Shown piece after piece: positions 4,118-57,758 of a DNA stretch of 64,000 nucleotides. A program made the translations under genes and the position numbers. Position 1 is the stretch's first letter. Each line of letters starts with the position of its first letter. This DNA is from Guillardia theta CCMP2712 (taxonomy: Eukaryota; Protista; Cryptophyta): positions 983,061 through 1,047,060 of the forward strand of contig NW_005434667.1 in assembly GCF_000315625.1 (NCBI RefSeq), in the 5' to 3' direction. The notes under the pieces are model-generated. The model saw only the letters and a list, made by a program, of their open reading frames with translations. It was not told the origin of the DNA and ran no database searches.

Positions 4118-4275
4118 GCCTACATTTTAAAAAAGCTGAGGTGATACCAGTGACAGAGATTTGTAATTTGAAAAGGAGTCGATTTTCTACTCAAGCCTGT
4201 GCACAAAGAATAAATATAAGGTGCTCCTCCGAAGGAAGGAGCGTGACGGGAGGAGCAAAATTCTGGCTTCTCATA

Positions 4276-5437: not shown

Positions 5438-5599
5438 TGGACCTCGAATGCAGTATTGCTTTTAGGAATTTTTGCTCAAAGACAAGTTTTGGGACAAAAA
5501 TCAAAAAACAAGTAGAACATCGAGCCCCCCTCAGATTCGGTAATCCAGGAATAGATCGGTGCCATGGCAGTGGGGGGAGGGAAAAGAGCATAAAGAACC

Positions 5600-33343: not shown

Positions 33344-34439
33344 ATGGCGGTAAGCTACGCCACCTTTGGCGATGAGGGGATGGGGAGTAGGAGGAGAGAG
33401 ACAAGAATGGAGGGGTATAAAGTCTTCCTGGTCTTTGGAGGGATGCTAGCTCTTGTTGCCTTTGGGATTGTTGCCCAGAGCTCTTCGTTGAGCAGAGCCC
33501 GACGAGTTGCCCTCAAGGAGGAGATCAACAACTACTCTGATTGGCTCAAGACCCTCAGTGGATCGAAGGAGGCCCCAGCTTCGTATACAGGAATTGAGGA
33601 TGAGCATGATGCCGACTTCGAGTCCCAGAGCGTCAAGCATAGTGGCATTTCATATCTCCTGCCAGGTGCTTTGCCCCAGAGCGAGGATATCGCAAAACTT
33701 CAAGGAGCAGATTTCGCCAATGACATTGTGAGTGAAACAAATCATGTGAGTTAGTGAATAGATGACATTTTTATGCAGAATCAACCGGACACGTCATCTG
33801 TGAATTCCCAGTCACCAATTGATAGCGTTCCACAACTCTTCGAGAAGTTCAAGACTGAGGTTTCTCAGGAGAGAGTTCTGTACAAGGACCTCAAGAGCAT
33901 TATGGATGCACACAAGCTTCCGAATCCTGAGTCACTTGTCGTCAAAGTTGCCGAGAGAGGTCCTCCAGGAGCTCCTGGGCCCCGCGGTCCCCGCGGCTTG
34001 CCTGGAGACGAAGGGGATCAAGGCCCCACTGGTCCTCCTGGGCCCCCTGGCGACGTCGGTCCTCGTGGTGTTCGTGGAGTCATCGGTGAGACTGGACTGA
34101 AAGGATTTCCGGGACCTCAGGGAAAACGTGGGTTTGAGGGACGCATTGGCAAGCGAGGACCGGTTGTACTTGTCTTTTGTTGTGCTGCTTCCGTTTGACT
34201 GGTGCTGATAGATGGGCTCCCCCGGAATTGACGGTCCTAAGGGCAGCCCAGGTCTACAAGGAGATCCTGGTCCTCCTGGTGTTCAGGTAGCCTCTGTATA
34301 TATTCACCCATCTCTTCTTACCGAACGCGCTTCTTTCGTGCAGGGCGACAATGGACCTAGGGGGTCTCAGGGCCCTCAGGGACCTCCAGGAAAGCCAGGT
34401 GCAAGTGGCCCATACAAGTATAAGTGGGTGATGGAATGA
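33344..34439 (+). CDS. Type II transmembrane collagen-like protein
   Basis: Short cytosolic N-terminus, TM helix ([18 protein letters not shown]), RARR, helical neck, then 39 uninterrupted Gly-X-Y triplets over three exons ending [10 protein letters not shown]. Confidence 0.88.
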
Positions 34440-34585: not shown

Positions 34586-36597
34586 TCAAAAAGAAATATT
34601 TGGTGTACCTCTGGTTTCCATCGAAACCTTTTTGAACGCTTCTTTTGCCAACTCATAATACTCTTGACGGATTTCAAATTCTTGGTGGGGTGGTTCTTTC
34701 GCATCAACAGTATTTTCTGTACTTTCTTTTGATGGAAAATCTATGTCTATCCAAGACTTTGAACCCACGTATGATGAAATGCCATTGGTCCTCCGCTCAT
34801 TATCTTCGTTGAAAAATTTGATAGCTGCCTCTTGAAGGTCAGGCATGCCCATGAAGATATTAAGCCATCTCTCATTTTCTTCTATTTCATCTCTGATTTC
34901 TTGTGCATCGCTTTCATCAAAAGTGAGATCCATTAGATCTAGATCCCTTTGATCTATATTCAATGATGTGATGTTGCCCATTTTCCTGGTCCGATCAAAA
35001 GCTTCTTCAACAGCATCCCAAGTCTATCAGTCAGGTCACGCCTGTAAATACAACAAGGAAAATTTACCTCTCGCAAAAAATGAGGGGAGTCCATCTGACA
35101 GATCGCTTCCCAAGTCTGCAAGTGGTGCGGGCTCAATTTGCTCCTAACAGCAGATCAACAGAGTCATTAGAGTACTTTTTGTTTTTGTTCTTCGTCAATG
35201 TAAGGATTGGCTGAGTCTCCCAGATCCGGGAAATCCTGCTCTGACGTCAAGGATGTTACATGCTCTAAGAATATGCGGACACCTTGGTTAGATTTTCGCA
35301 GGCAGATTTGAACGCAGGAAGATTTTTCGATATATTTTGGAACGATTCTTCACAAGTGAGATAGTATGCCTGATATGCATACAAGAATCAAAACCAATTC
35401 GAGATTCATCAAATTCTTTGCCTGACGTATTCGATCCTCGTCGTTCAGCACATTTTTTCCTTCAATTGATTCGAGGTATTTCCTGTTGGAACTTTTGTAA
35501 AGTATCAGCCAGAAGTCCAAAGACATACTTATTCTGAGCACGTTTCCATGCTAACTGTGCATAGACACTGCTTGATTCTTCAACTTCTTTCTCATCTGGA
35601 TCATTGTTAGTTTTGACTAAGCTTGGTAACACCTTCCTATTTCCAGTTTTTCCAGGACGCGAATGATGGAGAAATTTTTGATACCAAGAAATTCAAGGCT
35701 ATGTTCATTATCAAGCTTTTGGAGTTGTCGTCCATTGCAAAGAAGGATCTGTTTCTTAATGTCGTATCCCCTTGCTTGGTCTGCTATGGAAAGGTTGCTG
35801 TAATTGTATCTGTAGTAAGCTTCGTGCTCCCAGATCGTGTATTTCAATTGTCTCAACTGGCATTGTACATCTAGTCGCAAGAGATAATGACATCCGATAC
35901 TACTTTTGATGATGATGTCTACTTGAACTGGCATTTGCTTGTAATTCAACACGTAGTCAGGAAGGAGCTCAGGTCTTGCGCCGGGCTTTCCGATATCTAC
36001 AAGATGACTGGTCTTTTTCCAGCGTTCTACCTTTGGAACAATTTTGACCTGATCATTTGATGCCAATCCCAACCTTCGATTGCCTTCTGGCGTAGGATAT
36101 TTACGATCTAATTCTTCTAAGGTCCAGATTTTCCTGTAGCCGATCTTTGCTCTTTCAGGGTTTTGTGCACGTGCATTTTCAGCGTTCATAAGCTTCAATA
36201 GGTTTGTGGTATCGAGTTCACCCAATGCAGTTTCTAAGCCTCCTTCAATAAGTTTTCGCTGAGCAATCTCAACATCGTGCATAGCCCTGTGCTTCTTTCT
36301 TTTCAGCTCCTTGAGATTCAAGTGTGGGAGCACGTCCCTTTTCGTTTCTTCTTCCAAATTACAGACAGTTATGGTATCGTTGCCGTATCTATCGTCAAAC
36401 AAACCCAGCGTTTTCAAGGGTCTCTTTTTGACAGGATCTGGCTCCGGCACTTTCTGCTCGTGCATCAGCTCCTCTTGCAATTGTTGTACAGACTCATGGT
36501 TTGACGAGGAGTATGCGCTACTGTCGATCGAGGACGCCTTAACACAAACCAGCAAGATAACGAGCAAGAAACTCACATACGCTTTTCTTGTGCTCAT
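34586..36597 (-). CDS. Signal-peptide protein with internal ubiquitin-like domain and acidic C-terminal region
   Basis: N-terminus MSTRKAYVSFLLVILLVCVKA-SS; UBL pattern VDIIIKSSIG...LRQLKYTIWE...KKQILLCNGRQL...EHSLEFLGIKNFSIIRV; downstream exons end GTPNISF*. Confidence 0.65.
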
Positions 36598-37120
36598 ATC
36601 ATCCCTCAAGGGAGGGCTCACTGCCCTCTTCTCCCCTTGGTTAGCATCGTCGATGCGCCCATTGAAGCGATCTGCTCGACACTTGCGCGACCTGCCCGGG
36701 CCCGGCCGGGGAGCAAGCGCCCGACAGTTGACTGTGAGTGAACTAAAGCACCAACCCTACCCCTCAACTTTCAACCCCTCATACTCCACCTACCCTCTAC
36801 CCACAAATTTGTATTGGAATGTACCCCTTCCTGGATCTCCCCACTCTTTATCTTCAACCTACGGTAGTACCCGGGAGGGCCGGGGGCTTTCTAGTGAGGG
36901 CCCGGCTCGCCTGTCACGAGGAATGAGGTACAGGTCCTTCTTCTGCTAAGTGAGAGTCTAAGTGTAGAAAGCAAACCTCTCACCATCCCCCTCTATTCTC
37001 AAACTGCCAAAGGCAACCCAAACCCCTGATAGCAAAAACCTCAGCCTGGCTCCATGCCATGAGCGATGAGCCTCTTGTTGGCGGGACGAGAAGATTAAAG
37101 ACGCTGATGCCGTCGGGTTG

Positions 37121-40100
37121 ATGGGATCGTCACAGGCTAGTAGCCATTGCGCAAAAGCCCTATACGGCTTGTTGATGCTGACAACAGCTGCAACTAGCTT
37201 GGCTCAGATCTCTTTCTGCAATGGGAACACGCTTCCAAATGGTAGTACAGCACTCTGCATTGAGCCAAGCTTGGTCCCAATGGCTGGTGGAGCAGTTATT
37301 ACGATGAAAGGGCTGAGCAATGCAGTATTTTCAAGTTGGACTGCTGAATGTAGTCACATGGAAAAGTGGAAGTGTATGGTAGGATACAGCGAAAGCTCTG
37401 GCGCTGAAAGTATCCCTCTCTTATCGATGAATTGCGAGAAAGGATTTGCCCAGTGTGTATCTCCGGGCAGAAAGACAACTGGAGATGTTCCATTCTATCT
37501 TCAGTTCATGGATGCTGATACTTTGTCAATGCTCCCAACCCCAGCTGCAGGAACTCTCTACCTCGCATACTTCGGTATAAAATTCTATTGTTGCTTTCAT
37601 CCATTATGGTGACGATTCCTGTAGGAATCAGTAAAATGAAGCCAATATCAGGCATCAGTGGCATGCAGCCAACTGTAACGCTCACTCTTCTCAATGCAAA
37701 GAATGTCACTCAGTTTCAGTGTAAATTTGTTCCCTTTGGCAGTGGATGGCTTGACCCCTCCATACACCCTCTGATCATTGCAGACTACAAGGGAGCTGGA
37801 CAAATTGGCTGCAGGGTTCCGGATAGTATTTTGCTTTTATCCCCCCAATTTCAAATAGCGCAGGTATTGATCAATCCTCACATGCTCGCTTGGCAAATAC
37901 GCTTCTGAAAGTTGTTGTTCAGGTCCAAATTCTTGTCACCGAACTGCTCACAGGAAGCACAGCGACCTCTTACAATACCACATACACGGATTCACAGTGG
38001 ACTTTCTCTCTTTACAGAGCTTTCAATATAACCGGAGCAAATCTCTTGCTTGCTCCATATTCAGGAGGGACTAATATTTACGTGTACGGCCAGGTATGCG
38101 ATTGATAAGAAATGATCTTCTGTTGACATTTTATAAAGGGATTCTTCTCATTTCCAGGATTATCATGCCGATTGAAGTGGTGTCTCGACTACAATGTAGA
38201 AAGCACGTGTCAGACCACGTTGTTTGGAAGCGCTTTGTACATGAATCATACAACAATCAAATGTGTCACAGGATCGTTCTTCCCAGGCGATCAAGACTGC
38301 AATACTCAAGTAAGCTTGAAACTTTTGATCTTTATTGACCTGAGTGTTGAACTTGCCTTACAGTGCTTGTCTGGTGGATTGCAAGGAGGATATAGGGAAT
38401 TTCCAGCTGTTTCGGATTTGAATTACAGGAAGAGTGACATAATCCAATGCTGCGGAATCACGTGCTGTACAGAACAAGCCAGACTTCAGATAGCATTGGA
38501 TGGTGTACAATATCTTCCCACTTCAGATGCCGTCAATGCACCCAAATACGTTTTGCAGCAGAATGCACCTGAAGTTTTCATCACTATGTACATTGAACCT
38601 GTCATTTCTCGAATTTTTCCTCCAGCAGGCCCTTTACAGGGACAAGTAGAAGTTACAATATTTGGCTACAATTTTCATTCAGCCTCCCTGGATCTTGCAA
38701 GAAACTTAACGATTTGCAAATTTCGAAATTATCAGGTAGAACAGGGAAATCCAGTTTGGACTCTGGTACCTGCAAAGTTCTTGAGTGAGACGGAAATCAT
38801 TTGCACATCCCCGTCTTCATACCATGCTACCAATGAGAGTGTCGGCCTTTCTATCAACTCTCAAGATTTTGTGTCCAACGTCAACGTCAGATATGCTTAT
38901 TTTTCAGTGACTGAGATTATTCCTTCTTTTGGCGGCTGGTCAGGAGGAACAGATGTTTTGGTCAAGGGATACAATCTTGCAAGTTTTGAAGGCGAAGTAC
39001 ACCGGAAGTACACATGCAAATTTTTCAATCAAAACATCTCAAAGGTAGTGACAGCCTCTATCACAAATTCAGGGTTTTTGAGATGTTCTACACCACCATT
39101 CTCTTTGGGGTTGGTAAACTTCAGCTTGGCTCTGTATCAGGATCAATATTCTCGTAGCTCTCATGTGTTTCAGTTTCAATCGGAGGCTTACATTTTTGCA
39201 GTGAGCCCTTCGAGTGGACCAATGGTTGGTGGTTATCCTGTTTCACTGTATGGCGCTAATTTTTTCAATTCTACATATTTAGCGTGCGAATTCAAGATAG
39301 GTACAATATCCGATGTAACCACAGCTGGACACTTCCTCAGTTCGTCTCAAATCTTTTGCATTGTGCCTTCGAGTTATAGCTCTGGAGTATCGCGTATTTT
39401 TGTTTTGAATAATGGACAGCAAACAAGTGCAACTTATTCCGAATTCACTTATTTTTCAGTTCTGAACATCGTTCCAGTGGGTGGCCCAACAAGCGGCAAT
39501 ACGATAGTGCGAGTTACTTTATCAGCACAAACGGATAGAGCGTGGTGCAAGTTTGGTTCGCATACTGTTGAAGCTGCCCTTGTTCACCTAACGAATCAGT
39601 CGAATTCAACTGGCTCTGGAAATGTCTGCTTCAACAACAATACAAGTCTATATTCTCTTTCATCGAATTCATCAAGACAATGCTGGAATTATACAGTATT
39701 GCGCTTGTATGTGCATAATGATTCTAAGTGTACACATAATTTCGAGGGCAATCTAACGATAAAAGTTTCAAATGATACTTGTTACCAAACATCGAACGAC
39801 ACTTTTATCCGTCTTGTACAGAAAAATCTTTCTCACATTTATTTGCACAGTTCTTGTAATCAGAACTGTATGATTTGCAACAATTCTAACGTCTTTGCTT
39901 TGGAGACTTGTGAATATGGTTTACCAGTGTTATGTGTTCCTGAGCAATCTTGTTTTATACAATTTTTCGTTGATCAATTGGTGAATTGTACTTCATTCAA
40001 TCAAGATACCAGCGGTACATGCACAAATGCTTCAACTGGACCAAGTGCTGTAATTGAGTGTGCTACATTGAGCACAATGAGCTCAAATGTGCTTGGCGAA

Positions 40101-43100
40101 GAAGTTTATTTCAGCGTGTCGCTAAACAATCGAGATTTTGCGACATCAGATGTTTACAAAACTTTTACCTTCTTTCCCGAAGTGGTCTTACAGAAGCTGC
40201 TTCCTGAAAGTGGACCCAACAGAGGGGGCACAAGTGTCACAATGATTGGTCTCAATTTCTTTACAGCATGCCGGACAGGTTTAGATCCCTTGACGGGGCA
40301 ATGCTACAAATGCAGCGATGTTGGTTTGTACACCTGGACTTCATTGTCAAGCTGCACTGTAGTTATCCCCGGTAGTACAGCACGGGCCAACTTTTCATGG
40401 GCCAGCCTTCGAAAGTGCGGATTGCCGTGTCAGACTGGAGTGGATGACAAAAATTCATTCAGTGGAGATGGAGCAATTTATTGCAGGTTTGGAAGCATTG
40501 ATGCGGTTGCTTGGTATTTGACTCCAACACGAATGAAATGTACCTCTCCCAGGAATCCAAAGACCTCACTTAACAACCGCCTGTTGAGCCAAGTAAGTTT
40601 CAACAACCAGCAATTCACAAGTCAAATTCTATACTTCAGCTACTTTGAAATATTAAGCTTGTCTCCATCCGTTGGCACTGGTTATGGCGGGACTGTGATT
40701 TCAGTATTCGGATACAATCTGTTCACAGGCTCACGGGGTGGTCAGGAAGTTCAATGCCTTTTCTGGATTGACATACTGATGATTGGATCATATGACATGG
40801 TTAATGACTGCGTATATTGCCCTTCTCCTGAACAACCAGCAGAATTGCTGAACAATGGACAGAATACACTTCAATTTTCAGTAACTCTGAATAGATATAT
40901 TCTTGATCAATACTCCGATAATCAACTTACGTTTCAATACGTTCCTGCAGAGATCGCTACAATAATCAGTCCTTTTCGAGGACCTATGAATGGGGGGATG
41001 ACTGTGTATCTCGGTTTGCCCGCAAGCTCACAAAGAATTCCTGATCTTCTGCACAAATCGTATCCATATCAGTATCAACACTACTTTGCTCAGTCTTTCA
41101 TTAATTACTCATGGCCAGAGCCCAGAAGTGCTTGCCTAGGCCAAGTAACCGATGTCAACGATCCGGCCTTGCATGTAACTGCGACTCAATGCGTGGGAGC
41201 CGTTGCCAAGTTGAATCTTGACAACAGCACGTGGCTTTCATTCTCGCTTCCTGCTTATGCTTCACCAGCAACTGTAAATGTAGAAATGTCTGTGAATGGG
41301 TATTTGCAGAATCATTTCAACCCGACAGCGCAATTTACTCAACAAGCCTACTGCAATACACAGATAAATCAATGCGTGCAAGATAATCAAATGAAGGTTT
41401 GCAAATCCAATATAGATTGTGGTGGATTGAAATTCTACTACTGGGGTATCTTAAGTTTGTTTCCAGTCGCCTTCGATGTTGTAGGAGGTCAGATTCTGAG
41501 CCTGAGTGGTGACAACTTTCCACATCCTGAGGATCTTCCCAGCAAGTGTTTCTTTTTCGATGCGCAGCATGTCAAGTATGCCGAGGCTGTTACCAATGTC
41601 ACGGAGTCTAGTTGCACTCCCTGCCCAGCTAGGAATGTTCTTGGTGTGTGTGTTGTAAGCCGATTTTGTAAAGAAACGAAATGCACGGTTCCTCCATCCC
41701 CCACGGGAGAGCCGATGGTGGTCTATGTTGAACTCTCGTTTGGAGCTTCGTATCCGTTGACACAACAGGGAAAATCAATATGGTATTATAAATCTGCACA
41801 AATTACAAGTATCGACATTACAGCTGGCCCCTCGTATGGAGGTACGCTCATCATAATCAATGGAACAAACTTTGTTAATTCTTCTGGTCTTTACTGTCAG
41901 TTTAGCACAAGCAACCTTTTTTCTTTTGCGAACCCCAATTCGAATGCTTCATTCATCAGCAATACAAGTTTGCTATGTGTCGTTCCTCCATGCGATGTCT
42001 TAGCAATCGCATCGAAGGACAAGTCAACGTGCATGTCATGCTCTCGTTGTGAGGTAGATGTGTATGTAACAATCAATTCAAGGGACTTCATTGCTGGCAG
42101 TTCAAAGTTTTTGTACTGGGACAACCCTATCATTGACTCCATCTTTCCATTAAGGTCTCCAGTTCACAGCCAGGCCAAAATTCCTGTCACTCTTACCGGT
42201 CAAAACTTTGCAAACGTAGGAGCTCAGAACAAAGTTGGATACGGACTGAGTTGTAAATTTGGAAAATTGATAGTCAAAGCGCAATATGATGCTCATTGTG
42301 ATTTCTCACTTCCTGTCTGTAGAAATATTACATGCCTTCCTCCCACATACAGTCAATCAGGATATGTTGACGTTTCCGTTAGTCTTGACACACAGCAATT
42401 TACGGTTCCAACGAGAGGAAAATTCTCATATTTTAATGTTTCAAGTTTGAGACCTCAATACTTGCCAACTGGCACAAACACGAGTGTCCACATTTATGGC
42501 ACTTACCTTGACCATGGACAGGGTTACTCAATAAAATTTTCCAGCATTAGTTATGTGAAGTATGAGACTTGTTCTCCATTGAATGACATATCGATCCTAT
42601 GTTCGGTACCTCCCTTGGAAAGCTTGGGATATTCAGTTGAAATTTCTCTGAGCTCAAGTGAGATCTTATTTGCAGATAGAGACTTCACATCGCAGAATCT
42701 ATCTGTAACCACTTACACTCCTCCAGATGTGTATGCCGTCAAACCCAGCAAAGGTTTGGCTACCAATATTGTGAGTGTCACTCTCACAGGCAGAGGCTTC
42801 GTTAAGACAGACCTCATGATATGCAAATTCGGACAACTTCTGTCAAGTCCCGTTATATATGTCGATAATCAGACCTTGATTTGTAATTCTGTCCCTCAGT
42901 TCGGGCCTGTTGTGGTGTCGATAGCTTTGAATGGACAAGACTTTGCGACATCCAGTGCAACCTTCATAAATTATAAGACTCCTGTGATTTCTGCACTTTC
43001 ACCATCTGCCATTCCAGTGGGATATTCAGGAATTGTGACGATATTTGGAGATTATTTTGAGAAGTTCAGAACTTTGGCCTGTGGCTTCAGGTTTTCACAG

Positions 43101-46100
43101 GTTTTGTATACGCAAGATGCAATTTACACAAATAGCACTTTTATCACTTGTCAAATCCCTGTAGTGCATGATGCAGGATTGTTCGATTTCACCGTGTCCA
43201 ATGATGGTCAGCTTCAATCCAACACAAAGATTACTTTGAATGTATATGGGATATCTGGAATTTACCCCATCAGTAGTACAAGAACGGGGGGCTCCATTGT
43301 GACTGTTCAAGGCGAATATTTTTCACAATCTTCTCCCGTTCTATGCAGATTTGTTGCTCAACCAGGACTGGACCTTCACAATTCGCAAAAGAATACCATT
43401 TATGACTTGTTAGTGATCTCAGGTGGGGCGAATTTGACAGATGGAGTGTTTCCTTTGAAGATGTCGAAATGCTCAGAAACGGCAAGTGTGGTCTATGATA
43501 TCATCATAGTCAATACCTCCTTGACTTACATCGATGGCACCTATGACTTTCTAGTGACCTGCGACTCTCCATGCGCTGGCCAAGGGCTCCTGGCGACGTA
43601 CACGGTATTGCAAAGCAAAATAGTGTTGACGACTATTGTGAATCGAGGCTCCGGTTACACATCCACCAACCCTCCATCACTTTATCTGAGCGAATGTGGA
43701 GCTCAACCTCAAGGAGAAGTTTGCATGAGTGCGAAGTTCGAAGTGCTTGTTGGTTCAACTTGCAGCGAAGTTGGTTGCTGTAACCAAAACGTGGTCGGAT
43801 ACTACTCTGTATTGCATGGCAGCGTTGTTTCTGCCGAGGTCACGTATGGTGGGATTGGATTCAATCATTTAAACCCCCCGGAATTCAGCCCCAACGGTTG
43901 CGATGGATATGGAAATTCAGTTGGCTGCAAGTCCTGTATGTTTCAGAATCAGACCTATGAAGGAAGGTACTGCACAGTAGACAATGACTGTAGCACAAAT
44001 GCGACTTGTGAATATGGTGTAAAATTTCAGGTCTTTGTAGCAAACGTTACTGTATCAGAAGGTATATCGAAAACGATGGCACTTTGCAGAATCCCAGCAG
44101 TCTCTTGGCCTCCTGTACTCTCTGGTTTTCAGCAAGTCCAGCTTCCACAATTGCTCTTCAATGGATTCGCGAAAATTTTTGTCAGTGTGAGATTTTCTCC
44201 TAAGATTCCCTTTACTCATGATTCAGCTGTTTTTTTCGTTTACGATGATCCAATGATACATTCTGTCTTGCCGAACAGTGCTCCTTCGAGAGGTGGAACA
44301 GTTGCTACCATTTCGGGGACGAACTTTAAATATGAGCAAAACATTTTTACCGTGAATTATCCTTGTACCAGGGCACAGGCACCTGTAGCTTGTGATTTCT
44401 CCACTGGATACGATGCTGTACCTGCAAGTGTTGAGGTTTTCTGTAGGTGGCACGAACGATTGCCGTCTGCTTATGGTACATTCGTAGATTCTTCGACTGT
44501 GTTGTGTAAAACACCGCGGGTTTGCTTTGAAGGAAGTACTATGTCTGGATGCGAAGATTGCGTAACAGAGGGTTGCTTGGAACCATCCTTACCTTACTCT
44601 GTAAGTCTTCCAACAGATTCGACCATTTCCTTCCAGTTGTCATCGGACAATCAAATATTCGTCATCGGAGATGCAGAACTTTTTGTCTATTCAATCACTT
44701 CTTTCGTCCCATTTGGTGGTGTGTACAATGGAGGTACTCATGTTACGATATCAGGGTTGAACTTTGACAGAGGTGGCCAGCTTCCATACAACGCTTACTG
44801 CAAGTTTTCACGAGTGGTTGTGCCCGCACAATTCATTCCACAAGAACAACTGATCATATGCATCTCACAGCCTCTCCTGGACATCTACACGAACCTTGAA
44901 ATCAATCTGGGCATCAATGTCAGTGACGACTCGCTTTGGACAGATGACAGACAGTATTTCTTCATGTACACCGCCTATCCAAATCCCCTGGAAATTCTAC
45001 CTGATTCTGGATCGTTTCATGGTACCCAACCTATTTCTTTCAGCGTCCCACGACCATTGCAATTTAACAATTTTCGGTTCAAATCATTCTCATTCAATAC
45101 GTTTCTTGAAGGAGTCGAAGTACACTTGATTGTAACAGGAGAAAGCTCTACGGATCCGAGACTAAACGGGCAGTTAGTTGCTCTTCGCCATCTGTTGGCT
45201 ATGGAAATGAATTTGGAGCTGTGCATGAAGAGAGATTCCTGCAATGGCAATTTAATTTGTATTAGAGAATGTAAGAAGCATACATTGTATTGTTCGATTG
45301 AAAACCTTTGCTATGGAAATGCAACTTGTTCATGTCGTATTCCGGATGTCAACGCTCAAGAACAAATTATCCCCTCTGATATTCAATTTGGGGCTGTTTC
45401 TTCTATCAACAATTCTGCATTTGTATTACCTGTTCGTGTTGAACCAGTAACTTCTGTCACTGAGGTTGAAAGAGCACTGCTCAAAATTTTTCAGGCCTCT
45501 CAAATTTATTCCGACCTGAAGAACAACGCAATAAATTATTACTTTTTCCAATCCATGGGATACCCTGATTTCTGCACCGTTGGGTCAAATAATGTCAAGT
45601 CTTGTCTCAATTTTCAAATCACTGTTTCTCCATTTTCGTACATGTACTATTCAGAATATGGAACATTCGCCCAGTTTGGAAGTTTGCTCACAGCGGGTTG
45701 GGTTGCAAATAACAGCCTGATGCAAGCCAATGTTGCCCAATCATCTTCAAGCATCTCTCCCACAGTCAGGCTTCGATTCTCGATAAATGGACAGCAATTC
45801 AGTCAGAACTCTATTTCGTTCTTTTACTATACAGTGAGAGAAATTTCACCATTTGGAATTCCGATCCGCTTCAAGTTTTCATTCCAATCTATTTCAAATG
45901 GTGATACTCAAGTATTGATTGCTTGCCCGAATTCAACAAGTACATGTCGTGAAACCTTTGTGAGGCAGTTCAACTCTCTTGCTACTATCACAGTTTACGG
46001 AAACAATTTTGTGAACACAACCTATTCGTCTCAGTCAGCTCCAAAATGCCGGTACGGTTATCTTCAAGACAACATGCCAGATGTTCTAGGCAGTCAGCTT

Positions 46101-49100
46101 GTAAGTTCTGTTGTAGTGCCGGTTGTTAATGTCAACTATCAACAAGGTTATGTAGAGTGCATTCAACCGACAGTTTTCAACCTGAACACTGCATTCAACA
46201 TGTCGATGGGCGCTTACGCGATTCGAGTCGAGGTTGCCCTCAACGGCCGCGATTTCAGTTTCAGCTCTCTGAGTGCGGGGGGTCTAACAGGTCTGACCTT
46301 GTTCCTGGAGCCACAGCTGACATCTATGTCTCCCTACTTCGGTCCAATCACAGGCAACACTCTCATCACTGTTATCGGTCAAGGGTTTCAGGTAGAAGCG
46401 TCACGAAGAACACCATCAACAAGCTTTTGTTTGTTTGACGTTTATGGGTCTTTAGCTTCGGCTCCCCCTTGGGCTGTCACAGCAGCTACAGTCATCGACA
46501 GTTCTACAATTATCTGCCGTTCTCCTCTACTTAGTAAGAATGGATATGGTTACACTCAGGTGGTTCAACTGCTTCCACCACAGCAGATCTATGTCTATGT
46601 TACTTTTGACAACTTTCATTGGCACACTGATCCTATCAAGAGCGCAGAGAATGCATTCTCCTTCTTTGATTTGCAGTATATCATTCCCAATCTTGCTGCA
46701 ATTCAATACTCTGCCCAGTCAACCACAACCCTGACTTTCAGTGTCGGCAATTTTCTGCTATCGAATTTGAACGGGTATTGCTGGTGGAGAGTACCGCAAA
46801 GCACCCTAGATTCTTCGTTTGTCACGGTTGCAACGCCTATTGGGGGAAACACATACCAATGTCAGATTCCGGATTGGAGCAAAATACAATTGAACGGACA
46901 ATCAGCCGCTTCTTTGATCCCTTGCACCGGAAAGGACATCAACGCCTCACTAGCCACTTGTAACTCCGATGGCAGTCTGACTGTTCCTTTCGGTGTTGCT
47001 TTCCAAGATGCCAAAAGTACGATAACAGAATCTTCTTTCAACTTTGATCAAGAATTTACATTTTACTCCACACCTCATTTCAACGATTATTTACCCAAGC
47101 TAGGTGACACAAATGGAGGTACAGTGATCCAAATATATGGAGACAATTTTGTAAACTCCAATCAAATACAATGCAAATTTGTCTTTAAGTCAATCCAACA
47201 GACTGCTACCTCAGTTCTATTCATTTCAAGTAAATTGATGGAATGTGTCACCCCCCCTGAGTTGAACTCCAAGGAAGTCACATTATATATTACCTTCAAC
47301 GGTGCTGAACAAATCTCTTGTAATACTTCTTCCATCTGCAAATTTTGGCATCCGTACTACAACGCAGAGAAATCTTGCTGTTCATGGAATGGAAATCAAA
47401 TTGATACGTTCAGTTACTCTCCGAGGCCAACTGTGAGTGCCTTGCAGCCGAATGCAGCACCCTCCCTTGGTGACACCGACATCAAGATCATTGGGAACAA
47501 TATCATAACCGGTGTGAACGGAATCGTCTATGCATGCCTGATAGATTCAAATTATGTCCCTGGAGTATTCCATGCAGAGGGTGGGCTTCAATTCATGACA
47601 TGCCTCACATTGCCAAACATGAGAATCAGCAACCTGGAAGTTCGAGTAAGTTTGAATGGTTTTGAATGGTCGGACAGCTTTCAAATTTTGAGTGTGTACA
47701 AGCCATTGCGACTATTCAGTGTAAGCCCTGCCTTCACTCTCTGGGATAATCCAATACAGGAAGTTACTCTTGTCGGAGTCAATTTCGTAGTACCCAGTGC
47801 GCAAGTTGGAAGCATTCTTGTGCGATTTGCCGAATTTGACACTTCAGTTCAACCTCCGATTGTAAGATGGAAAAAAGATCTTTCTCCTGCTCGCTATGGC
47901 AATGCAATAGCTGATGTGTATGAGCCTTCCTTAGCCGGAGGAATTCTTACCGATGTCATCACTGTCTCTCCACCAAAACGCACCCCTTGTAGTCAGGTAG
48001 GAGCCTTATATTGCGAAGCTGGAGTGGTTCAAATTTTTGTGAGTCAAAACGAGGGAAATGATTGGACCTGGGAAACTGTAGATTTTGCCTACATATTACG
48101 TCCAAATTCTAAACAGCAATGCTTTGGTGAAGTTACTGGAGCGAACCCTACCTGTGCGTTTGCAGCTATAGAATCTCAGGGTAAAGTTGTTTTCTTGGAC
48201 CAGCCGTGGAATGTTAGGGGAACCTGTGAGCTGGGAAGTGACAGCATCTCGGGACAAGGAGCCACTACCGGGCGATGCGTGTGTACGTCAAGTGATTGCA
48301 GTACTGGAGCCTACGATTGTGGTGATCGCACTGGAGACCTGACGTTGGGCTGCTCTATCAAGGCTGCCATCACCCATATGGAACCCAGGAGTGGTCCACA
48401 TGTTGGGGGAACCAAAGTGACGATCCGAGGTTTCAAAATTAACAACGGCACAGGATACTTTTGCAAGTTTGGGACACAAATCGTGCAGGCATCATTGAAT
48501 CTCTCCTATGGCCTTGTCGAATGTGCGTCTCCACCTTTAGACAAGAACGGAAGTGTTGAGGTAGAGATAACAATCAGTGGCGGATCTGGACAGATAGTGG
48601 ATTCCAATGCGGAATGGACTGTGTCTCGAGGCTATCACTTGTTTCACTACTTTTTGACACCGACGATGGTTGGTTTGCAGCCTTCCATCGGCCCGGCAGA
48701 TGGAGGCACCCTTGTGACAGTGACCGGAGGGTTGACTGACAAACTCATGGCGCTGGGGGTGACGTGGAGGTCTCTTGATGTAGACTCCTCAGGAGCTCCC
48801 CAATGCAAGGGCCAACAGATTGCAGGATTGTGCAATGGAATGTACGTCTATGGAAGTTACACCGACTATGGTCCCGTGACTCCTGGATTTGAATCATATT
48901 GCGTATATGAACCTCATTGTCGTTTTCAACTGGATTATGAGCATATCGGGATCAAGTGTAAGTTTTGTTCACTGACATTAAATTACTGCTTTGATTCAGT
49001 CAATGTTACGTTCCTCAAACCGAATGTTGTTCAATGTATAACCTCTCCAAATCAAATGTTGCAGAATGGAAGCGCTTTCTCTGACCTTATGAGAGTCTCA

Positions 49101-52100
49101 CTCACTTTGAATGGCCAATTGTACATGGACATTCCAACTGCCTTTGTCGTCCATGCTTACAACAACATTTATCGTGTAGTTCCCGAAGCTGGTCCTCTGA
49201 GCGGAGGAACCTGGGTGACTTTATTTGGACAAGGATTCATTTCATCAAGTCTGACGGTATGCAAATTTGGAGTTACCGCAACTAGGTATGAGTACGTCAG
49301 TTCCAGTCTAATGCAATGCTTATCACCGCCGAGCGTACAGGAACAGAGTGTCAACATACAAATATCCTTTAATGGAATTCAGTTTGAACCATCCTCCAAT
49401 ATTCCCTCGTTCAGTTACATAATCTTATGGACAATCTCTCAGATATCTCCTGTATTCAGTGGTGAAACAGGAGGTTCATATGTCGAAGTTTTAGGTTCAA
49501 ATTTTTTCAATACTACCTCAATATCATGTAAGTTCGGGACGACTGTTGTGCGGTACCCTGATGCTCAATTCATCTCATCCTCTCAAGTCACGTGTCTCCT
49601 CCCTCGACAGACATTGCCGCGCCCTCACTTTGTCACAGACAGAGCCTCATGCGACGGTACATACGTACAAGGAACACAAAGAAACGACAGTGGATGGTCA
49701 GTCTGTGCTGGTTGTGTCGAATGCTGCTCCTGTCCAAATTGTCCTAACTGTCAAGTCTGTATTTGCACAACAACTACTGGGTGTTGCACGTCGACATTGG
49801 CAAACGATACAAGACAGTTTTTCCGTGGATGTGCTCCAAACCCTCCCCTTGCACCGGGTACCCCTCGTTCGCTTTGTCTCAATCCAACGTACAAATGTGC
49901 ATGGGTGGTCATCGATCCAACAACCAAGTACTTGACCTGTGCCTTGCAACCTTTTGCAGGAACTCTCTTGTTGCCGCCCCAACCTACAGACATTCTTTTC
50001 AATCCGAACACAACCTTTCTATTCCCTGACCTCGCTCTCCGACTGACAGTACCTTTCTTTCTTGCCTTGGATGGACAGACATGGACCTCAAGTTGCTTGC
50101 GCAATCCCGAGTCGAGTGTTCCTCCCTGTCCTACTGAGACTCAAGGATGGAATGGCACCTTTACTATTCTTGAGCAGTACAATGTAACAGCCTTTAAACC
50201 AAACGTAGCCCCGTTGACAGGTCAAACCGTGATCACCGTCTTTGGCGAAGGATTCGTGGCTTCGTCTTCCATCATATGTAAATTCGGATACAAGAACGGT
50301 GGAACCTTTGATCCTAACAACCCAACTGATGCAGCTGGCGTATTAGTAGGTGTGATAGCAAATGAAGTGCCTGGAACGTTTGTAGATTCGTTTTCAATCA
50401 TTTGCTTTTCTCCCCCCTTGGATAAATTAGTCTACGAATATGTCAATCAAAATTCCATTGCAATACAGCCTGTCATCACCCTGGATGGTTCGCCGCAAGG
50501 CTACTCTACACCAAATCCGATGTTTTATTACACTCCACTATGGAAAGTGACGAACATTCTTCCCTCAGCTGTTCCAACTCTTGGAGGTTACTTGGTGACT
50601 GCCTTTGGGCCATATTTCCACTCTTCAACCAGTGTGATGTGCAAGTTTGGAGCGTATTATGCAACAGAAGTCTTTCAGGAGGGTACGCAAAAGATTGTTT
50701 GCCGAAGCCCATCAGTTCAGATCCAGATGAAAGTGAACTTCACAGTGACTGTAGATGGTGAAATTTGGAGTCAACCGTCGAACACGTCAATATTCTATTT
50801 TTATGGAGTGAGAAATGCATTGCCCTTTGGCGATAATGAATATGGTCAACTAGGATTTGGTGTCCGAGGACCAAGACCTTTCAGTGGCCTTATGTGCGTA
50901 GGAGGGAAATACGACGGGCTATACTGCCAGCATGCACTAGATTGCCCCAATGGAATCTGCTCCTTCGTGTCAAAAGACTTGAACCTAGAACCAAGATACC
51001 TAAGCCTTTTGTTTGGGCACAACGTGACCCATGGGGCCATGGGACAAACGCACACGATGTTGATTTCATCTGAAACATATTCTGATGTTTATGGCACGCA
51101 GCCAACTAAGGGTGTCCTCTATTCTTTTGGCGATAATCTGGTCGGCCAGCTAGGTTTCGGCTTTGCGGGGCCCTCCTATTTTCAATACAATTTTTCTGCA
51201 CCATCAGCAGTCATTTGCGAGCCATCTGAGGTATACCTGCTAGACAGAAGAGTCGACAGCCGTGCAATTGTTGGTTTGCCCAGCAGCTGGCCAGCAGAAT
51301 CTTGGATTGTTCCAACCTGCATCAAGTATCAGGACGTGAACACAAAGGGAGTTTGGTCCTCCATAGCGATAGTGCTTTTCAACCCGTTTTATTTGGAGCA
51401 TGTCGAAAGGGTAGCAGCTGGAAGTTTTCATAGTCTCGCTCTTACCAGCCAAGGAAATGTGTATGCCTGGGGATGGAACAATTATGGACAGCTTGGAATG
51501 GGGTCTGCAGACATGCGCCCGAATATCCCTTATCCTTCTGAGGTCCTTTTTTTTGCTTCTTTGAATTCGAAAGTCATAAAACTTGCAGCTGGTTTCTCAC
51601 ATTCTGCTGCAGTCACATCGGGGGGAGTTTTGTACACCTGGGGTAATAACAAGTATGGGCAGTTGGGTCAAGGTGATTATCTCGCACGTCGCTTACCAAC
51701 TGCTGTCTCGGGCTTCTATGATTCGAATGGAAGGGTTTTGCAAGTGTTTGATGTGGCATGTGGGCTATACCATTGTTTAGCGCTAAGTGAACAAGGGCTT
51801 GTGTGGAGCTTCGGTTTGAATTCCAGAGGACAGTTAGGCACTTGCGACTCTACCCCTGTTTTTGATGGCGAGAGCTTAGTTTGTAACAACCCAACCCCTC
51901 TGATGATAGACGCTGCTGTTTACTCCAGTCCATTTCCCCGTCAGGTCTTCTTTTCGCATGTTACAGATTACACAGGAGCTTTGATTGGTCAGCCTTACGT
52001 CGTTCAGATCCATGCAGGAGCATTTCACTCGATTGCAGTGACTATCAATTGTGCTCAGACGTTGAAATCTCTATCAGTCTCTTGTACTGCATATGATTTC

Positions 52101-55100
52101 TCGAATACCGATCTGTATGTTTGGGGGAATAACCGATATGGACAACTGGGGCTTGGTGTTAATTCAGATACAAGCTTCAAGAGCTTTCCAGCACTTGTGA
52201 CAGCCCTACAAACCATCTCGTCAAGATGTAGATCCGGGCAGAGTAGTAACTGTATTGAAGCCCAAACATTCATGAAGGACGGAAAGCACGTAGTGAGTGC
52301 CGCGGGAGGGAGCTGGCACACGCTGGTATCTGTAGTACAACAAGAAGCCATTGGCTACAGGAGATCTTATGCCTCCATCAGCAGGGTGTACAGTATGGGT
52401 AACAATGATCAAGGACAGCTTGGACATGGCGACCGAAAAATCAGAAATACACCTACTGAGATCCAAACGAACAATGTCGAACTGCATGAACTCGGGGCGA
52501 ACTACTACCAGTCTTTCTTCACAGTTGGCTGTCCTCCGTCTGACAGCAACGTATGCAATCACAATGGACAATGCTCAGAGCAAGGAATCTGCACCTGCTT
52601 CTCTGGATATCGCGGTGAAAGTTGTATGATTGAGTGCGATGGTGGAGCTAAGACCGTTTGTTCCTTGCATGGTAACACTACACTAGCAGAAATCATTAGC
52701 AGGTGGAGACAGAAGAATATCTTAGCAACTTCTGGTCATAGTCTGAAACGTAGACTGGATGCTGCAATGAAAAAGTATGTTTGTGTGATCCCTGGAGCTG
52801 TGGATTCAGTGTATCCGAGCTTAGCAATGTGCTCTGCTAAATGTGCTTCGCAAGGTGTATGTAAAGCAATTGATGTTACGATGATCACCAGCGAGCAAGT
52901 TCTGAATTTGCTGAATAGCATTGTTCAAGATTTTCCCACCATGAGTACCGCAGTGAATTTTGTGATTGAAGATTGGCCCATCTACCTCTTTGTGTCTGGT
53001 CAGAGCAGTTTGAAGTTCCCGTCCGAGGCTCGTGCGGCTGTCCTTGACAACTCTACCGTGGGTCCAAGTCAAGGATATTGGACCAGAAACGACATCATGC
53101 CAATGCTGCAGATGCTTCAGAACAGGTCCACGTGCTGGTCAAATTATAGCTGTGGCTATGGGCAATGTCCGATCATACCCGGAGTTACTCGAGTCACAGT
53201 CGGAGAGTCGAACTTTGATGTTGCACCTGGTTGTAGAGATGGGATGACTGCACAGGTTCACTTCAAGAAAAGAATAGAAGAGATCGATCAAGTGTGGAGT
53301 AATCTTGAAATGGCAAACCCTTCTTGTGATCCCATTGCGGTTGCAAACATGTATGGGCTCACGAAAGAGCAAGTGCAATACATCTGGGCCTCTTTCGAGA
53401 CGAACCCTTCCAACGTCTCGAATGCAATGCTGTCTCAGCCCGAGAGTTACTTGAATGCTCCGATTGTCGACCCGGTCCTTGCTGTCTCGCAAGTCTGGAA
53501 CGCGTTCGATGTTGCCTGTCAAAACTATTCTCTTTCCCAAATTGACGCTGGTAATGAGTGTAATTCTAACCTCTAGTTCTGACTTTGCCTTGCAGGTTGT
53601 ATGCAAGATGGTACGTGTGTTTGTAGTTATGGATGGACTGGATCTGCCTGCAATGTCGAATGTAAGGGCGGGGCCAGCAATCCTTGCAGCAATCATGGAA
53701 TATGCCGAACAGATGGGATGTGCATCTGCGACCGAGGATGGACTGGGGCCGACTGCTCCATAGAATGTGCAGGAGCGGCGGAGAATCCAAACCATTGGCC
53801 ATGTCACCTGCACGGGAATTGTGAAGGATGGTTTATCAACCCTCAGACACAATTTCAGTATGGTCCTGTCGATGTTGGACAAGCAAAGTTCTTCACAAAC
53901 GCCAAGGGATTGACGACCTTTGACGTGGGGACAAGCGTGGCGACAAACGGGTCGTGCCAATGTCATTATGGATTCCGAAACGCGATTGGAGACTACTCGT
54001 GTTCTGCTGAATGCCCAGGGATAGCTCTGGACTACGTAGCAGAGACTGGAGAATGTTACAACAACGGGATGTGTAATGCCACGGGACAGTGTCTGTGCTA
54101 TCCCGGGTATAGGAATATTTCTTGCAACGTCGAATGCGTAGGAGGGCATCTACGTGACCCCGTGCTTGGGACGTTCTACTCGAACGAATGTACCGCTCAG
54201 CTCATCTGCGACGTGTACCCAGACTATGTCATCCAGAGCCGCAACGGGCCCATCAAGTGTAAGGATATGAACCCGTACGCGCTCGACTACAGCAGGGACT
54301 ACAACCAGTCGGTCTCGGGGGTCTACCTTCGAGTTTTCAACGGCCTGTGTCAGTTCGAAGATCTGCCGTATCGGCTGGATCAGCGAGCAGCTCCTGTCCC
54401 CAGCTGCCCGTACGTCGACTGGTGCAACCCGAACATCTCCATCGCCCTGAGGAATGGCGTCTGCAGTCAGAGCGACTACTGCATCGAGCATCAGACTCAG
54501 ACCAAGAACTTCGAGGGGCAGCCGGTCAACCTGACCTCCACCTTGAAGGATGCTTTGCTGGGCCCCCCACCCCAGGGATGTCCCAGTGTTGAATGCGCAC
54601 AAATCTCCGCGTACATCGACAAGATGAAGTATCCCGCGAGCGACAATCGCTTCCAGTACCATGACTATGAACCTGACCTCGCCCCAAACCACTCTCCTCT
54701 GCTGGGCAAGTGCTACTGCCTTCCCGGATTCCGAGGAGCTAGTTGCAATCAGAGATGTCCGGGGGGAACATATGGAGGTGAAGACCTCAGCGGTCGGTTC
54801 AGATTCTTCCCTACAACCTTGGACAGAAAGGCGACAGACCAGCAGGTGTACGGCTTCGACGTCTTACGCGGATGGGACAGCACAGGCGATGGAGTGCCAG
54901 ATGGGGTAGCGGGGCGAGGGTTGATCAACATTTGCTCAGGCAACGGCTTCTGCGAAGAGGACGCGACGTGCTCCTGCTTCTTGACCGATAAGGGCCCTCA
55001 CACAAACGAGGTTTACGTGACTGGCTGGCGAGGGCTTGCGTGTGAAATTGAATGCCCGGGAGGAGCGCACTCGATCTGCAGTCGTCATGGCGTGTGCGAC

Positions 55101-55619
55101 GACGTTGGCGAGTGCTCGTGCTTCAAAGGCTTCCGCAACAAGAGCTGTGAGGTGGCGTGTCTAGGGCAGAGGGACTGCAACCCAGCCACGGGCTGTGAGG
55201 GGGTCTGCAACTACGCAGGATCCTGTCAGGAGGACGGATCCTGCATCTGTGAGGCAGCGTTCAGAGGCAGCGCATGCGAGCTTGTGTGTCCTCCCTTCAC
55301 TGGCTTGGCGTCAGACATCTGCAACTTGCGGGGAGTCTGCAATGCGGAGGGTGTGTGTAACTGCTACGTGTGGTACCAGGGAGTCGCGTGCGAGCAGATC
55401 GCGTCTTGGGTCATCGCAGTAGTCGTTCTCTTCACCTTGGCTCTCATTGCCGTCTCGGTACACCTTATCCGCAGGTGGCTGCACAACCGCATGCGCGCCC
55501 GACGACGAGCACGACGAGAACGGAGGAAAGTGAGGAGAACAGAAGCTGCTGTGAATAGAATGAAAGGCTACAAGGTCCCAATCCCCGACGACATGTCTAT
55601 GCAGGCAAAGGGGATATGA
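37121..55619 (+). CDS. Giant (~6,000 aa) type I membrane protein: signal peptide, ~30 IPT/TIG repeats, 7 RCC1 repeats, EGF-like repeats, TM helix, basic cytosolic tail
   Basis: Signal peptide ...ALYGLLMLTTAATSLA-Q; repeated PxxGPxxGGTxVxIxGxNF...CKFG...CxSP; seven WGxNxYGQLG-type motifs (50815-52520); CxCxxGxxGxxC EGF units (52530-55395); TM WVIAVVVLFTLALIAVSVHLI. Four small 5' exons, exon 38364-53550, intron 53551-53595, then the last exon. Confidence 0.9.
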
Positions 55620-55633
55620 TTTACAGTACAGAA

Positions 55634-56461
55634 TCATTCAGAGAAGACGCAAGCGAGAACAGAAGCATTCCAGGTAGAGATGAAGAGAATATTTCCCCAA
55701 GCGTGCGACTTACTTGGATGCACCTTCTCTGGTTGCGACCTAACGACGAAATGTAAATCAATTAAACAAATTCAAAATCTGACTTCACCTTTCGTGCCCG
55801 GCCGATCTGGGGTGATTGTAAAGAATATCAGTGATGGACAACGACTTCTGACAGGTCAACGTCTCAGGCTTCCACAGCTTGATCGTTCCATCCATAGAGG
55901 TTGAAATTAAAGAATATTCAGGTGACAATGACCTGACAGTCCATGGTCATCCGCATCGAAAGCAAGCAACAAACACACATGCTCAGGCCTGTCACTGCCG
56001 CATCGTGGGCGGTCACTGCTTGGACGACTTCGCCTATTGTCGGATCATGTTAGATGAGGTTGAGCGCATGTTTGAAACATGAAGAAGACCTGTCCCGTAA
56101 TCCCACATCCATATCTTCCCGCGTGTATCGCTTGCATAGACAGCGATGAAGGTGTCTCTGCCACGATCAATCTGACAGCTCTGCACGTTGTTGAATTTCT
56201 CTGACTCTCCTTCAAGGCTCTGCAGGCATGGAAGTCACCTTATGTCTCCATTCTTACATCTCATTCACAAGTGTGCATCTTCCATCTTCAATGCTCCACA
56301 TCCTGACCGTCCCATCGTCACCTCCCGAGATCACCTGGTCGCAATTCAAACGGCTCCTACTGGGGCTATATTAACCACTCTCTCTTGCTGCAGGACGTGA
56401 AGAGCAGCAACCCCACTGTAATGACTGGACGAGAGTCAGCTCCTGCTCCTACTCATGCTCA

Positions 56462-56507
<46 letters not shown>

Positions 56508-57677
56508 GATGCTCCCCTCCCACCCGCCTGCCCTACTTTTTTCCTCCCCTATTTTTCTCCTCTGCCTCACCCACCCTTCGAGTCTGAGTAGAGGCAAGGC
56601 ACCTTGTGGTCCCCATAACTATGGAACCACATCAGAGACAGCAGAAATCGGCCGGCCCTTACATCCCAGATGTTGATGGTTGTGTCGACGGACCCTGTGA
56701 TGAGATGGACTTGATCCGAGTCATCTGGACTTGTCAAGGCGATGCTCCAGATGGGCCCTGAATGACCCGCGTACTCTCGATGAGCAGGAGAGCCTGGAGA
56801 GCTGTCGATCTGTTTCTCGAGATCTCACCACGTGAGCGAGGGCGAGGAGAGGGTCACCTTCCACAGCCGAGCCTTGCAGTCCAGTCCTCCAGCCACAACA
56901 AAGTCTCTCATGGCCGCCATGCACAAGATCGGCCCAGGTTGAGCATGATCTACATCGGAATGAGACGATGAGCACGATGGGTCTTTGCTTGCCTGCTCCA
57001 AAGGACCGGATAGGAGCCGGGGCTTTCTTTTCCGCAGACTCCAATGTGTAGCTCAAGAAGGTTGGGATCCGATACATGAAAATCCTCCTGTCCCCTCCTC
57101 CTGTGAAGAGATATGGACCTCCTGGAGCAAACGATCAGTCAAAGCTCCCAAATCTCCTGCCCTTGCATCACCGCCACACATGCTGATCACCGGCCCTTCA
57201 TGGTCATGAAGGACTGTGGCTCTCATGCCCTTCGGATTATTCGGCAAAAGTTTTTCACTCACGTTGAGCCTCAAGATTCTCTTCCAGTTGCGAGCCTGTA
57301 GATCAGAACCCTCTTGGTGGTATGATTGCCCCGATTTCAATCCGAGTGCAACCTTGTACCTCTCGATCTTCTGCCTCCCGAGCGCTCGATGCACGCATCT
57401 TTGCCAGAGAGTAGAAGATTCAAGAGATTGCACGAGAGAATTCCATGATGTCGAGACCATCTCCATCTTCGCCAACTCGTCCAGGTCGCAGAATCCTAAG
57501 ATGTACAGGAAGAGGCTCCTATTGCACAACGTCACGTTTATGCAGCTTGATCTACACCATAGAAACTTGGCGAGTCGCGCACCTTGGCATGCCTCTTTCT
57601 CTCTCTCCCTCCTCCATGAAGCCCCAGGCTCCTCCTGGTCGCGACAGAAGCTCCCGGAACCCAAGTTGTCGCGCCAT
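55634..57677 (-). CDS. F-box/WD40 repeat protein
   Basis: Spliced F-box GMPR|SLFLYILGFCDLDELAKMEMVSTSW...LWQRC; WD repeats LTGSVDTTINIWD, VISGGDDGTVRMWS, GKIWMWDLR, ISTSMDGTIKLWK; ends ACVFSE*. Confidence 0.8.
56435..56515 (+). repeat. (GCTCCT)n hexamer microsatellite inside an F-box/WD40 intron
   Basis: Seen directly. Confidence 0.9.
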
Positions 57678-57758
57678 GACATTGGTGGAATGATGTGTCC
57701 CACGAATGATGGGTGACATATTGTTAAGTGAAATGGTCTGGAGGCCGGGAAGGTTGAC

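Follow-up and report, generated by a model that had tools for sequence, protein, structure and literature searches.

The locus at positions 37121 to 55619 of a 64,000-nucleotide (nt) stretch of DNA from Guillardia theta CCMP2712 (contig NW_005434667.1; the whole stretch is called the window below) raises the question whether one gene can encode a single surface protein of about 6,000 amino acids (aa) that joins a long array of IPT/TIG domains to an RCC1 repeat set and an EGF array, and what kind of protein this might be. Such an architecture had been proposed in a first-pass annotation, which was made from the letters of the DNA alone and regarded the locus as the best candidate for an undescribed system in the window. 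The gene is real, transcribed and conserved, and its domain combination, including an RCC1-type propeller and an orphan domain in the ectodomain, is uncharacterised. Giant TIG surface proteins form a large repertoire in cryptophytes, to which this gene belongs as one well-conserved member.

Reading of the open reading frames (ORFs) on the + strand gave a giant open frame at 38127-53573 (5,149 codons), a second open stretch in the same frame at 53583-55616 (678 codons up to the stop codon at 55617-55619) and three short open pieces upstream of the giant frame, which are joined to it via short GT..AG introns and therefore belong to a eukaryotic gene. Frame and splice signals gave a first gene model with its start at the ATG at position 37121, which RNA contigs then corrected. 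The sequence is present in transcriptome-like assemblies of two studies (X1, 2014; X2, 2018) and in DNA runs X4-X7, and RNA and DNA runs (four runs) were aligned over 36900-42800. In the corrected model a single + strand gene runs from this ATG to the stop codon with six exons and five short GT-AG introns (Table 1). Both ends agree exactly with those read in the first-pass annotation, and its size estimate holds (6,081 aa), whereas its plain read-through is replaced by the five introns.

Two of the introns determined the final model. Intron 4 is in frame, stop-free and undetectable without RNA; the gene calls of the orthologues P0023 and P0041 start immediately past its position (38310-38363), and a 6,099-aa model reading through it, which had gained a spurious hydrophobic segment, was ruled out by the RNA contigs. 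One frame of the gene runs through 5,062 codons without interruption. At intron 5, the spliced junction (...SQIDAG/CMQDGTCVC) shows a gap-free alignment to P0021 and P0031, orthologues that have no intron there, and the gene calls of P0023 and P0041 stop precisely at this junction.

The locus is one nuclear gene with a single mRNA of about 18.5-20 kb, of which the 5' part and the splicing of introns 1-4 are seen in the RNA contigs. By its length, the X1 contig (19,757 nt) is projected to end about 1.4 kb past the stop codon, and the second X2 contig (15,086 nt from 40686) is projected to end about 200 nt past it if one further 45-nt intron is removed; from these lengths we infer a single transcript running through the stop codon. 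The projected X1 extension (55620-57052) enters convergent - strand ORFs (56721-57703), and the part past the stop codon is either a long 3' untranslated region (UTR) or the product of overlapping convergent transcripts that were merged by the assembler. The DNA contig of X4 (depth 6) lacks one base at 39963 relative to the window and both RNA contigs, most likely by a contig error.

The product of the corrected gene model has 6,081 aa, a mass of 663 kDa and an isoelectric point of 5.5. The signal peptide, which was read off the sequence by eye and not by a predictor, is putative. Every one of the 272 cysteines and 81 N-x-S/T sequons is located N-terminal to the transmembrane helix, which is the only strong hydrophobic segment besides the signal peptide, and these topology signals mark the product as a predicted type-I membrane protein that would be heavily N-glycosylatable. 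No enzymatic or channel domain was found in the protein.

The larger part of the product is the TIG stalk. The Pfam TIG family was matched in each third of the protein with E values from 1e-37 to 1e-44, and 30 TIG units were found between aa 47 and 4477 by using a hidden Markov model (HMM) built from the protein's own repeats. One extra TIG domain was detected in aa 1190-1376 by profile-profile comparison with hhalign (probability 95), and the other gaps scored below 20% probability against the TIG profile. For nine stalk gaps and inserts, no usable Pfam match was obtained even at E <= 1. Most of the gaps hold a cysteine-rich knot with 6-16 cysteines per 50-110 aa; an Atlas look-up of one such spacer (aa 4084-4300) returned no usable match, and that of the gap at aa 2531-2884 returned weak TIG leads only (<=0.87). 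The AlphaFold2 (AF2) model of a stalk segment (aa 3440-3690), with a predicted local distance difference test score (pLDDT) of 29, was uninformative. Pairwise identity among the TIG units is at most 39% and the DNA of the gene has no internal repeats or self-similarity, so the array is old and not recently amplified.

The stalk is followed by a propeller of the RCC1-like domain superfamily, in which PF25390 was matched with 208 bits (cut-off 150) and PF00415 with 184 bits. Seven GQLG-type RCC1 blades, as expected of one complete propeller, can be read in the sequence at aa 4497-5050, with long inserts between the blades, one of them cysteine-rich. The closest solved chains are those of UVR8 (1e-55), HERC2 (its RCC1-like domains), RPGR and RCC1, all of them intracellular proteins.

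Between the first EGF unit and the remaining ones lies the orphan domain of 308 aa, for which a search of aa 5100-5407 against 1.84 billion representative proteins gave six matches, at least four of which (P0121, P0122, P0123 and P0125) are fragments of orthologues. Its alignment comprises seven sequences with a mean column identity of 62% and long invariant motifs (MLQNRSTCW...PGCRDG.TA...KR.EE.DQ.WSNLE). The AF2 model (pLDDT 73, predicted template modelling score 0.76) is moderately confident and suggests a mainly helical domain. No Pfam match at E <= 1 and no usable Atlas sequence match were obtained for it; Foldseek against the PDB gave nothing at E <= 0.001, the ESM Atlas shape search reached a TM of at most 0.29, and an exhaustive VIA-align scan reached a best Z of 4.6, with weak EF-hand-like rows only (Z about 3). 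Because the alignment of seven sequences is shallow, the domain is called unassigned and not a new fold.

About 11 EGF-like units were counted in the protein from the cysteine motif, and in the EGF region PF23106 was matched with 96 bits, together with PF07974. The TIG, RCC1/WD40_RLD and teneurin-type EGF matches of the protein exceed their Pfam cut-offs by a wide margin. The AKGI C-terminus of the tail is conserved in three species, and the ciliary VxPx motif is not conserved in the compared tails. Every element in the module list of the first-pass annotation was recovered, namely a signal peptide, one transmembrane helix, a tail of about 50 aa (49 aa here), about 30 TIG repeats (at least 31), a complete RCC1 set and about ten tenascin- or teneurin-like EGF units (about 11). 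The orphan domain and an insert of about 150 aa break up the EGF units.

Table 1. Features of the gene and of its product, with positions in the window.
Feature	Residues (aa)	Positions	Strand	Basis and remarks
5' UTR, minimum extent		37043..37120	+	start of the longest RNA contig (X1, 19,757 nt) at 37043
Start codon and putative signal peptide	1-28	37121..37204	+	MGSS...TSLA/QI; n-region with K, hydrophobic core ALYGLLMLTTAATSLA, small-x-small cleavage site
Intron 1		37575..37624	+	50 nt, GT..AG; skipped in X1 and X2 RNA contigs, kept in DNA contig X4
Intron 2		37864..37922	+	59 nt; skipped in X1 and X2, kept in X4
Intron 3		38094..38138	+	45 nt; skipped in X1 and X2, kept in X4
Intron 4		38310..38363	+	54 nt, in frame, no stop; skipped in X1 and X2, kept in X4
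Stalk	47-4477	37259..50759	+	at least 31 IPT/TIG domains, cysteine-rich spacers, about 1,600 aa without family match
RCC1-like seven-blade beta-propeller	~4490-5055	50796..52493	+	PF25390, PF00415, seven GQLG blades
First EGF unit	~5066-5099	52524..52625	+	PF23106/PF07974, cysteine pattern
Orphan conserved domain, 308 aa	5100-5407	52626..53549	+	conserved alignment; predicted to be mainly helical, with a small sheet
Intron 5 (predicted)		53551..53595	+	45 nt, GT..AG; reading-frame need and orthologue alignment
EGF region	5408-6008	53596..55397	+	about 10 teneurin/tenascin-type units; unassigned insert of about 150 aa (aa ~5620-5775)
Single transmembrane helix	6009-6032	55398..55469	+	Kyte-Doolittle maximum 2.82
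Cytoplasmic tail, 49 aa, and stop codon		55470..55619	+	18 R/K; conserved (G/A)YK motif; C-terminus AKGI

The conservation of the whole arrangement was examined by using four metagenomic orthologues (P0021, P0023, P0031 and P0041), which are colinear with the product and 42-47% identical to it over the covered length, with a coverage per region of 94-100%. P0021 (5,805 aa, 47% identity) carries TIG array, RCC1 propeller, EGF units, orphan domain, transmembrane helix and tail in one uninterrupted ORF, and the other three are gene calls cut short that cover the TIG array through the orphan domain at 42-47% identity. Identity to the orthologues rises along the molecule, from 36-46% in the distal stalk to 52-64% in propeller, EGF units and orphan domain and 70% in the tail (P0021). 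In Hanusia phi, a transcript fragment (EukProt, P0127) is 88% identical over the last EGF units, the transmembrane helix and the tail, and its tail is identical over the first 37 residues and again at the C-terminal QAKGI. Through P0021, the partial gene calls and P0127, the same order, the orphan domain and the basic AKGI tail were all found outside Guillardia theta, and on this comparison of sequences we define a putative cryptophyte family of TIG, RCC1, EGF and transmembrane modules by these three shared features. The single giant surface protein gene of the first-pass annotation is supported by these colinear orthologues together with the spliced RNA contigs.

A survey of paralogues, which the first-pass annotation had recommended, was done on the Guillardia theta genome assembly (87.1 Mb, 669 contigs). 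One paralogue, at C60:461679-479141(-), has the same order of TIG array, RCC1 propeller, teneurin-type EGF units, transmembrane helix and basic GYK tail; it is 25-38% identical and has more introns, and a match to most of the orphan domain was not seen in it. It was detected by an EGF-tail search and tblastn and had been missed by the direct search with the RCC1 segment owing to its introns. Genome-wide, about 1,350 TIG candidates were found at first look, and at many further loci the TIG open frames span 3,000-16,482 aa (the longest being 16,482, 11,314, 10,988, 10,646 and 10,500 aa). Examples of such TIG giants are C67:52203-113151, C25, C2:900991-921851, C40, C56 and C134; several of them show runs of identical scores, indicating near-identical recent repeats, unlike the gene studied here. 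The gene is not singular: besides the C60 paralogue, the genome has further ectodomains with RCC1 and TIG that apparently sit on other membrane anchors, and dozens of giant TIG genes.

RCC1-like matches number at least 151 in the same genome, and PDZ matches at least 133. On contig C15, an RCC1-like match (C15:800894-801655) is followed on the same strand, 8.4 kb downstream, by an RSN1_7TM (OSCA-type) match at C15:791893-792483(-), an arrangement that is consistent with an RCC1-TIG ectodomain joined to an OSCA-like module. Outside the family, P0043 (7,087 aa) and P0051 (6,169 aa) are giant eukaryote-looking proteins with many RCC1 propellers and teneurin-type EGF units, and P0043 also has a signal-like N-terminus. 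As both combine RCC1 and EGF, this pairing in an ectodomain is not unique to the family, and extracellular RCC1 and EGF giants may occur in other protists.

In the neighbourhood of the gene, a collagen triple-helix repeat ORF at 33773-34198 (+), with 33080-33417, was found 3 kb upstream (PF01391, E 2.5e-17), and seven GGGGTR motifs (YACCCC on the - strand) are clustered just before it. Two + strand TACCCC motifs (36758-36763 and 36822-36827) lie 220-285 nt upstream of the RNA contig start at 37043, and YACCCC is over-represented in the window (46 observed vs 32 expected). At an orthologous locus (L005; JGI metagenome 3300052690, contig Ga0504710_0002261), an STT3 gene lies upstream on the opposite strand; synteny with it was not seen in the window, where the upstream ORF at 35617-36621 (-) has no Pfam match.

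With moderate confidence, the protein is read as a very long cell-surface tether or adhesion receptor that would be anchored to the cortex. A rod of at least 31 Ig-like TIG domains and cysteine knots would, when extended, project roughly 150 nm from a membrane-proximal hub, at some 4 nm for each Ig-like domain. The hub, in which about 11 EGF units join the orphan domain and the RCC1-type propeller and which is more conserved than the stalk, would probably provide the specific contacts to proteins or glycans, whether in cis or to the surface coat, and the highly conserved basic tail would link the protein either to acidic lipids or to the inner periplast, the skeleton beneath the membrane. Constraint is stronger near the membrane and in the tail, and the module order is conserved across species and in the paralogue. 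The plasma membrane of Guillardia has a knobbly surface over a continuous epiplast, and the epiplastins of the cryptophyte inner periplast uniquely carry PDZ domains (Goodenough et al. 2018, PMC6212826). The conserved free -AKGI C-terminus could act as a PDZ ligand, though a non-canonical one, and with the number of PDZ matches in the genome it therefore has many candidate docking partners.

Several points weigh against this reading. Surface location, rod geometry, binding by the hub and cortical coupling of the tail are all features that we infer. AKGI is not a canonical ligand of PDZ class I, II or III. The propeller lies close to the membrane, although adhesion receptors usually carry their ligand-binding heads at the tip. 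For about 1,600 aa of the stalk and for two inserts no fold could be assigned, and unrecognised functional modules may exist there. Direct RNA alignment covers 36900-42800, the transcript beyond 42,800 and intron 5 being deduced, and only 13 reads of the raw RNA-seq run X9 fell within 5.9 kb, which may mean that expression is low or condition-specific.

The strongest rival, though unlikely, is a sensory or mechanosensory tether, whose ectodomain would sense force or ligand and signal via a partner channel or receptor, in the way that PKD1 and fibrocystin work with PKD2. The presence on contig C15 of an OSCA/TMEM63-like module near an RCC1-like match speaks for it, since the same genome would then pair RCC1 and TIG ectodomains with such modules; so do the location of the strongest conservation in the membrane-proximal hub and tail and the lack of a catalytic domain of the protein's own. 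Against these stands the finding that no channel gene is adjacent within the window. The propeller of the channel fusions is reported to be distal, whereas here it is membrane-proximal, and the argument proceeds by analogy. A bolder synthesis, which we regard as rather improbable, would have an RCC1 propeller moved outside the cell, where a lineage-specific hub, composed of this propeller, a domain of new fold and EGF units, would tether the stalk of about 150 nm to the PDZ-bearing inner periplast via -AKGI; the protein would then be the non-channel member of a family that also has fusions to an OSCA-like mechanosensitive pore, and part of a hitherto undescribed surface system for both mechanosensing and anchoring.

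A location other than the plasma membrane has a slim probability. The topology signals fit organelle membranes as well as the plasma membrane, so that the protein might reside in a secretory organelle or the endomembrane lumen (ejectisomes, scale- or periplast-forming vesicles), or its ectodomain might be shed into the surface periplast layer. The strongly conserved cytoplasmic tail and the region next to the transmembrane helix argue for an intact, anchored function instead, and no conserved cleavage site was seen in passing, in an inspection without a search aimed at one.

Recognition of gametes or of self and non-self, as by Dictyostelium TgrB1/C1 or algal sexual agglutinins, is very doubtful as the function. 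It is suggested by the TIG ectodomains that mediate allorecognition in Dictyostelium. Cryptophytes also have dimorphic, probably sexual, life cycles (PMC7486100). The low depth in one RNA run could mean stage-specific expression. Recognition loci usually diverge and expand fast, whereas here each domain of the orthologues keeps its place at 42-47% identity, the Hanusia protein reaches 88% identity in the C-terminal part, no repeat turnover is found, and no polymorphism was seen among the runs, which may all be of one strain. Prey capture, self-recognition and flagellar sensing, which are among the roles put forward at first pass, are hypothetical, and the conservation of each domain speaks against a recognition locus that evolves fast.

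That separate genes, a mis-assembly or bacterial contamination have been mistaken for one gene is hardly credible. The RCC1 segment does draw high scores from giant proteins of bacteria with RCC1 repeats, and the RNA alignment is confined to the 5' third of the transcript, but spliceosomal introns are removed in RNA contigs of two studies, the frame of 5,062 codons is uninterrupted, intron-less orthologues span all modules and the bacterial matches are limited to the RCC1 repeats. Bacterial origin or contamination was ruled out by the introns and the spliced RNA.

The anchored tether or receptor favoured here bears on the cell-surface biology of cryptophytes (periplast, flagellar coats), for which very few molecular components have been identified, and a conserved giant anchor with a defined tail motif is a concrete handle for localisation and pull-down studies. 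With RNA-proven splicing and cross-species conservation, the gene is a well-supported eukaryotic case of an RCC1-like propeller in the ectodomain of a membrane protein, and it carries a conserved domain of 308 aa that has neither detectable relatives outside the family nor a fold match. This value is tempered by the very large number of giant TIG proteins in the Guillardia theta genome and by a function that is argued from sequence and analogy.

Comparison with known systems was done by using the full-text literature on the architecture, on Guillardia theta and on cryptophyte giant TIG proteins, in which no characterised family with TIG array, RCC1 and EGF was found, and the names attached to the protein-search matches, among which no family of the same architecture appeared; the first-pass statement that no characterised protein is known to join these arrays was thus borne out within both sources. 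Literature matches on Tetrahymena Mdl1 and on Chaetoceros were irrelevant.

Among bacterial proteins, giant RCC1-repeat surface proteins share extracellular RCC1-like propellers in proteins of several thousand residues, but in them numerous RCC1 copies occur together with Big_2, cadherin-like or FN3 domains, while EGF units, transmembrane helix and tail are absent, and the high-scoring matches share only the RCC1 repeats at 25-37% identity. The pure TIG giants of the same genome have no RCC1-EGF hub, several of them having near-identical recent repeats. Dictyostelium TgrB1 and TgrC1 are likewise single-pass surface proteins of a protist with TIG ectodomains, but they have about 900 aa, are highly polymorphic and have no RCC1/EGF hub, whereas the protein studied here has 6,081 aa and is conserved domain by domain.

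With teneurins, tenascins and MEGF-PEAR1 the protein shares EGF units that match PF23106 and PF07974 above the cut-offs, and with attractin and MEGF8 the combination of EGF units, a propeller (Kelch in theirs), one transmembrane helix and a short conserved tail. Type II orientation, an NHL propeller, a YD shell and a toxin-like end characterise the teneurins, whereas this protein is predicted to be type I; PF25024, which covers the whole teneurin EGF region, scored 47.6 and is below its cut-off of 65, and no Pfam matches to NHL, YD/RHS, FN3, fibrinogen, CUB, Kelch or C-lectin were found. The plexin, MET and semaphorin receptors follow a shared logic of beta-propeller, cysteine-rich knots, IPT/TIG stalk and one transmembrane helix, and plexin and MET stand with fibrocystin and PKHD1L1 as the nearest analogues in working principle. 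In these receptors, however, the propeller is formed by a Sema domain and occupies the distal tip, whereas here it is of the RCC1 type, membrane-proximal and C-terminal to the stalk; plexin and MET tails carry GAP or kinase domains, the tail of 49 aa here has none, and Sema and PSI gave no Pfam match in the whole protein or in the gaps.

Fibrocystin (PKHD1) and PKHD1L1 resemble the predicted product in being giant, heavily glycosylated type-I proteins that cross the membrane once, with a long IPT/TIG array on the N-terminal side and a short tail. They differ in having G8 and PbH1 modules, for which no Pfam match was obtained in the whole protein, nor in the gaps at E <= 1, and in lacking the RCC1 propeller, EGF array and orphan domain, and no sequence orthology to fibrocystin was detected. 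The protein is a member of none of the fibrocystin, plexin and teneurin families and lacks the defining features of the Tgr proteins too. In kind it belongs to the giant modular single-pass surface receptors, its membership of a large repertoire lowering its singularity and not its reality. The best functional analogy would be offered by fibrocystin and PKHD1L1, which act as coat or sensor proteins on the surface of cilia or stereocilia.

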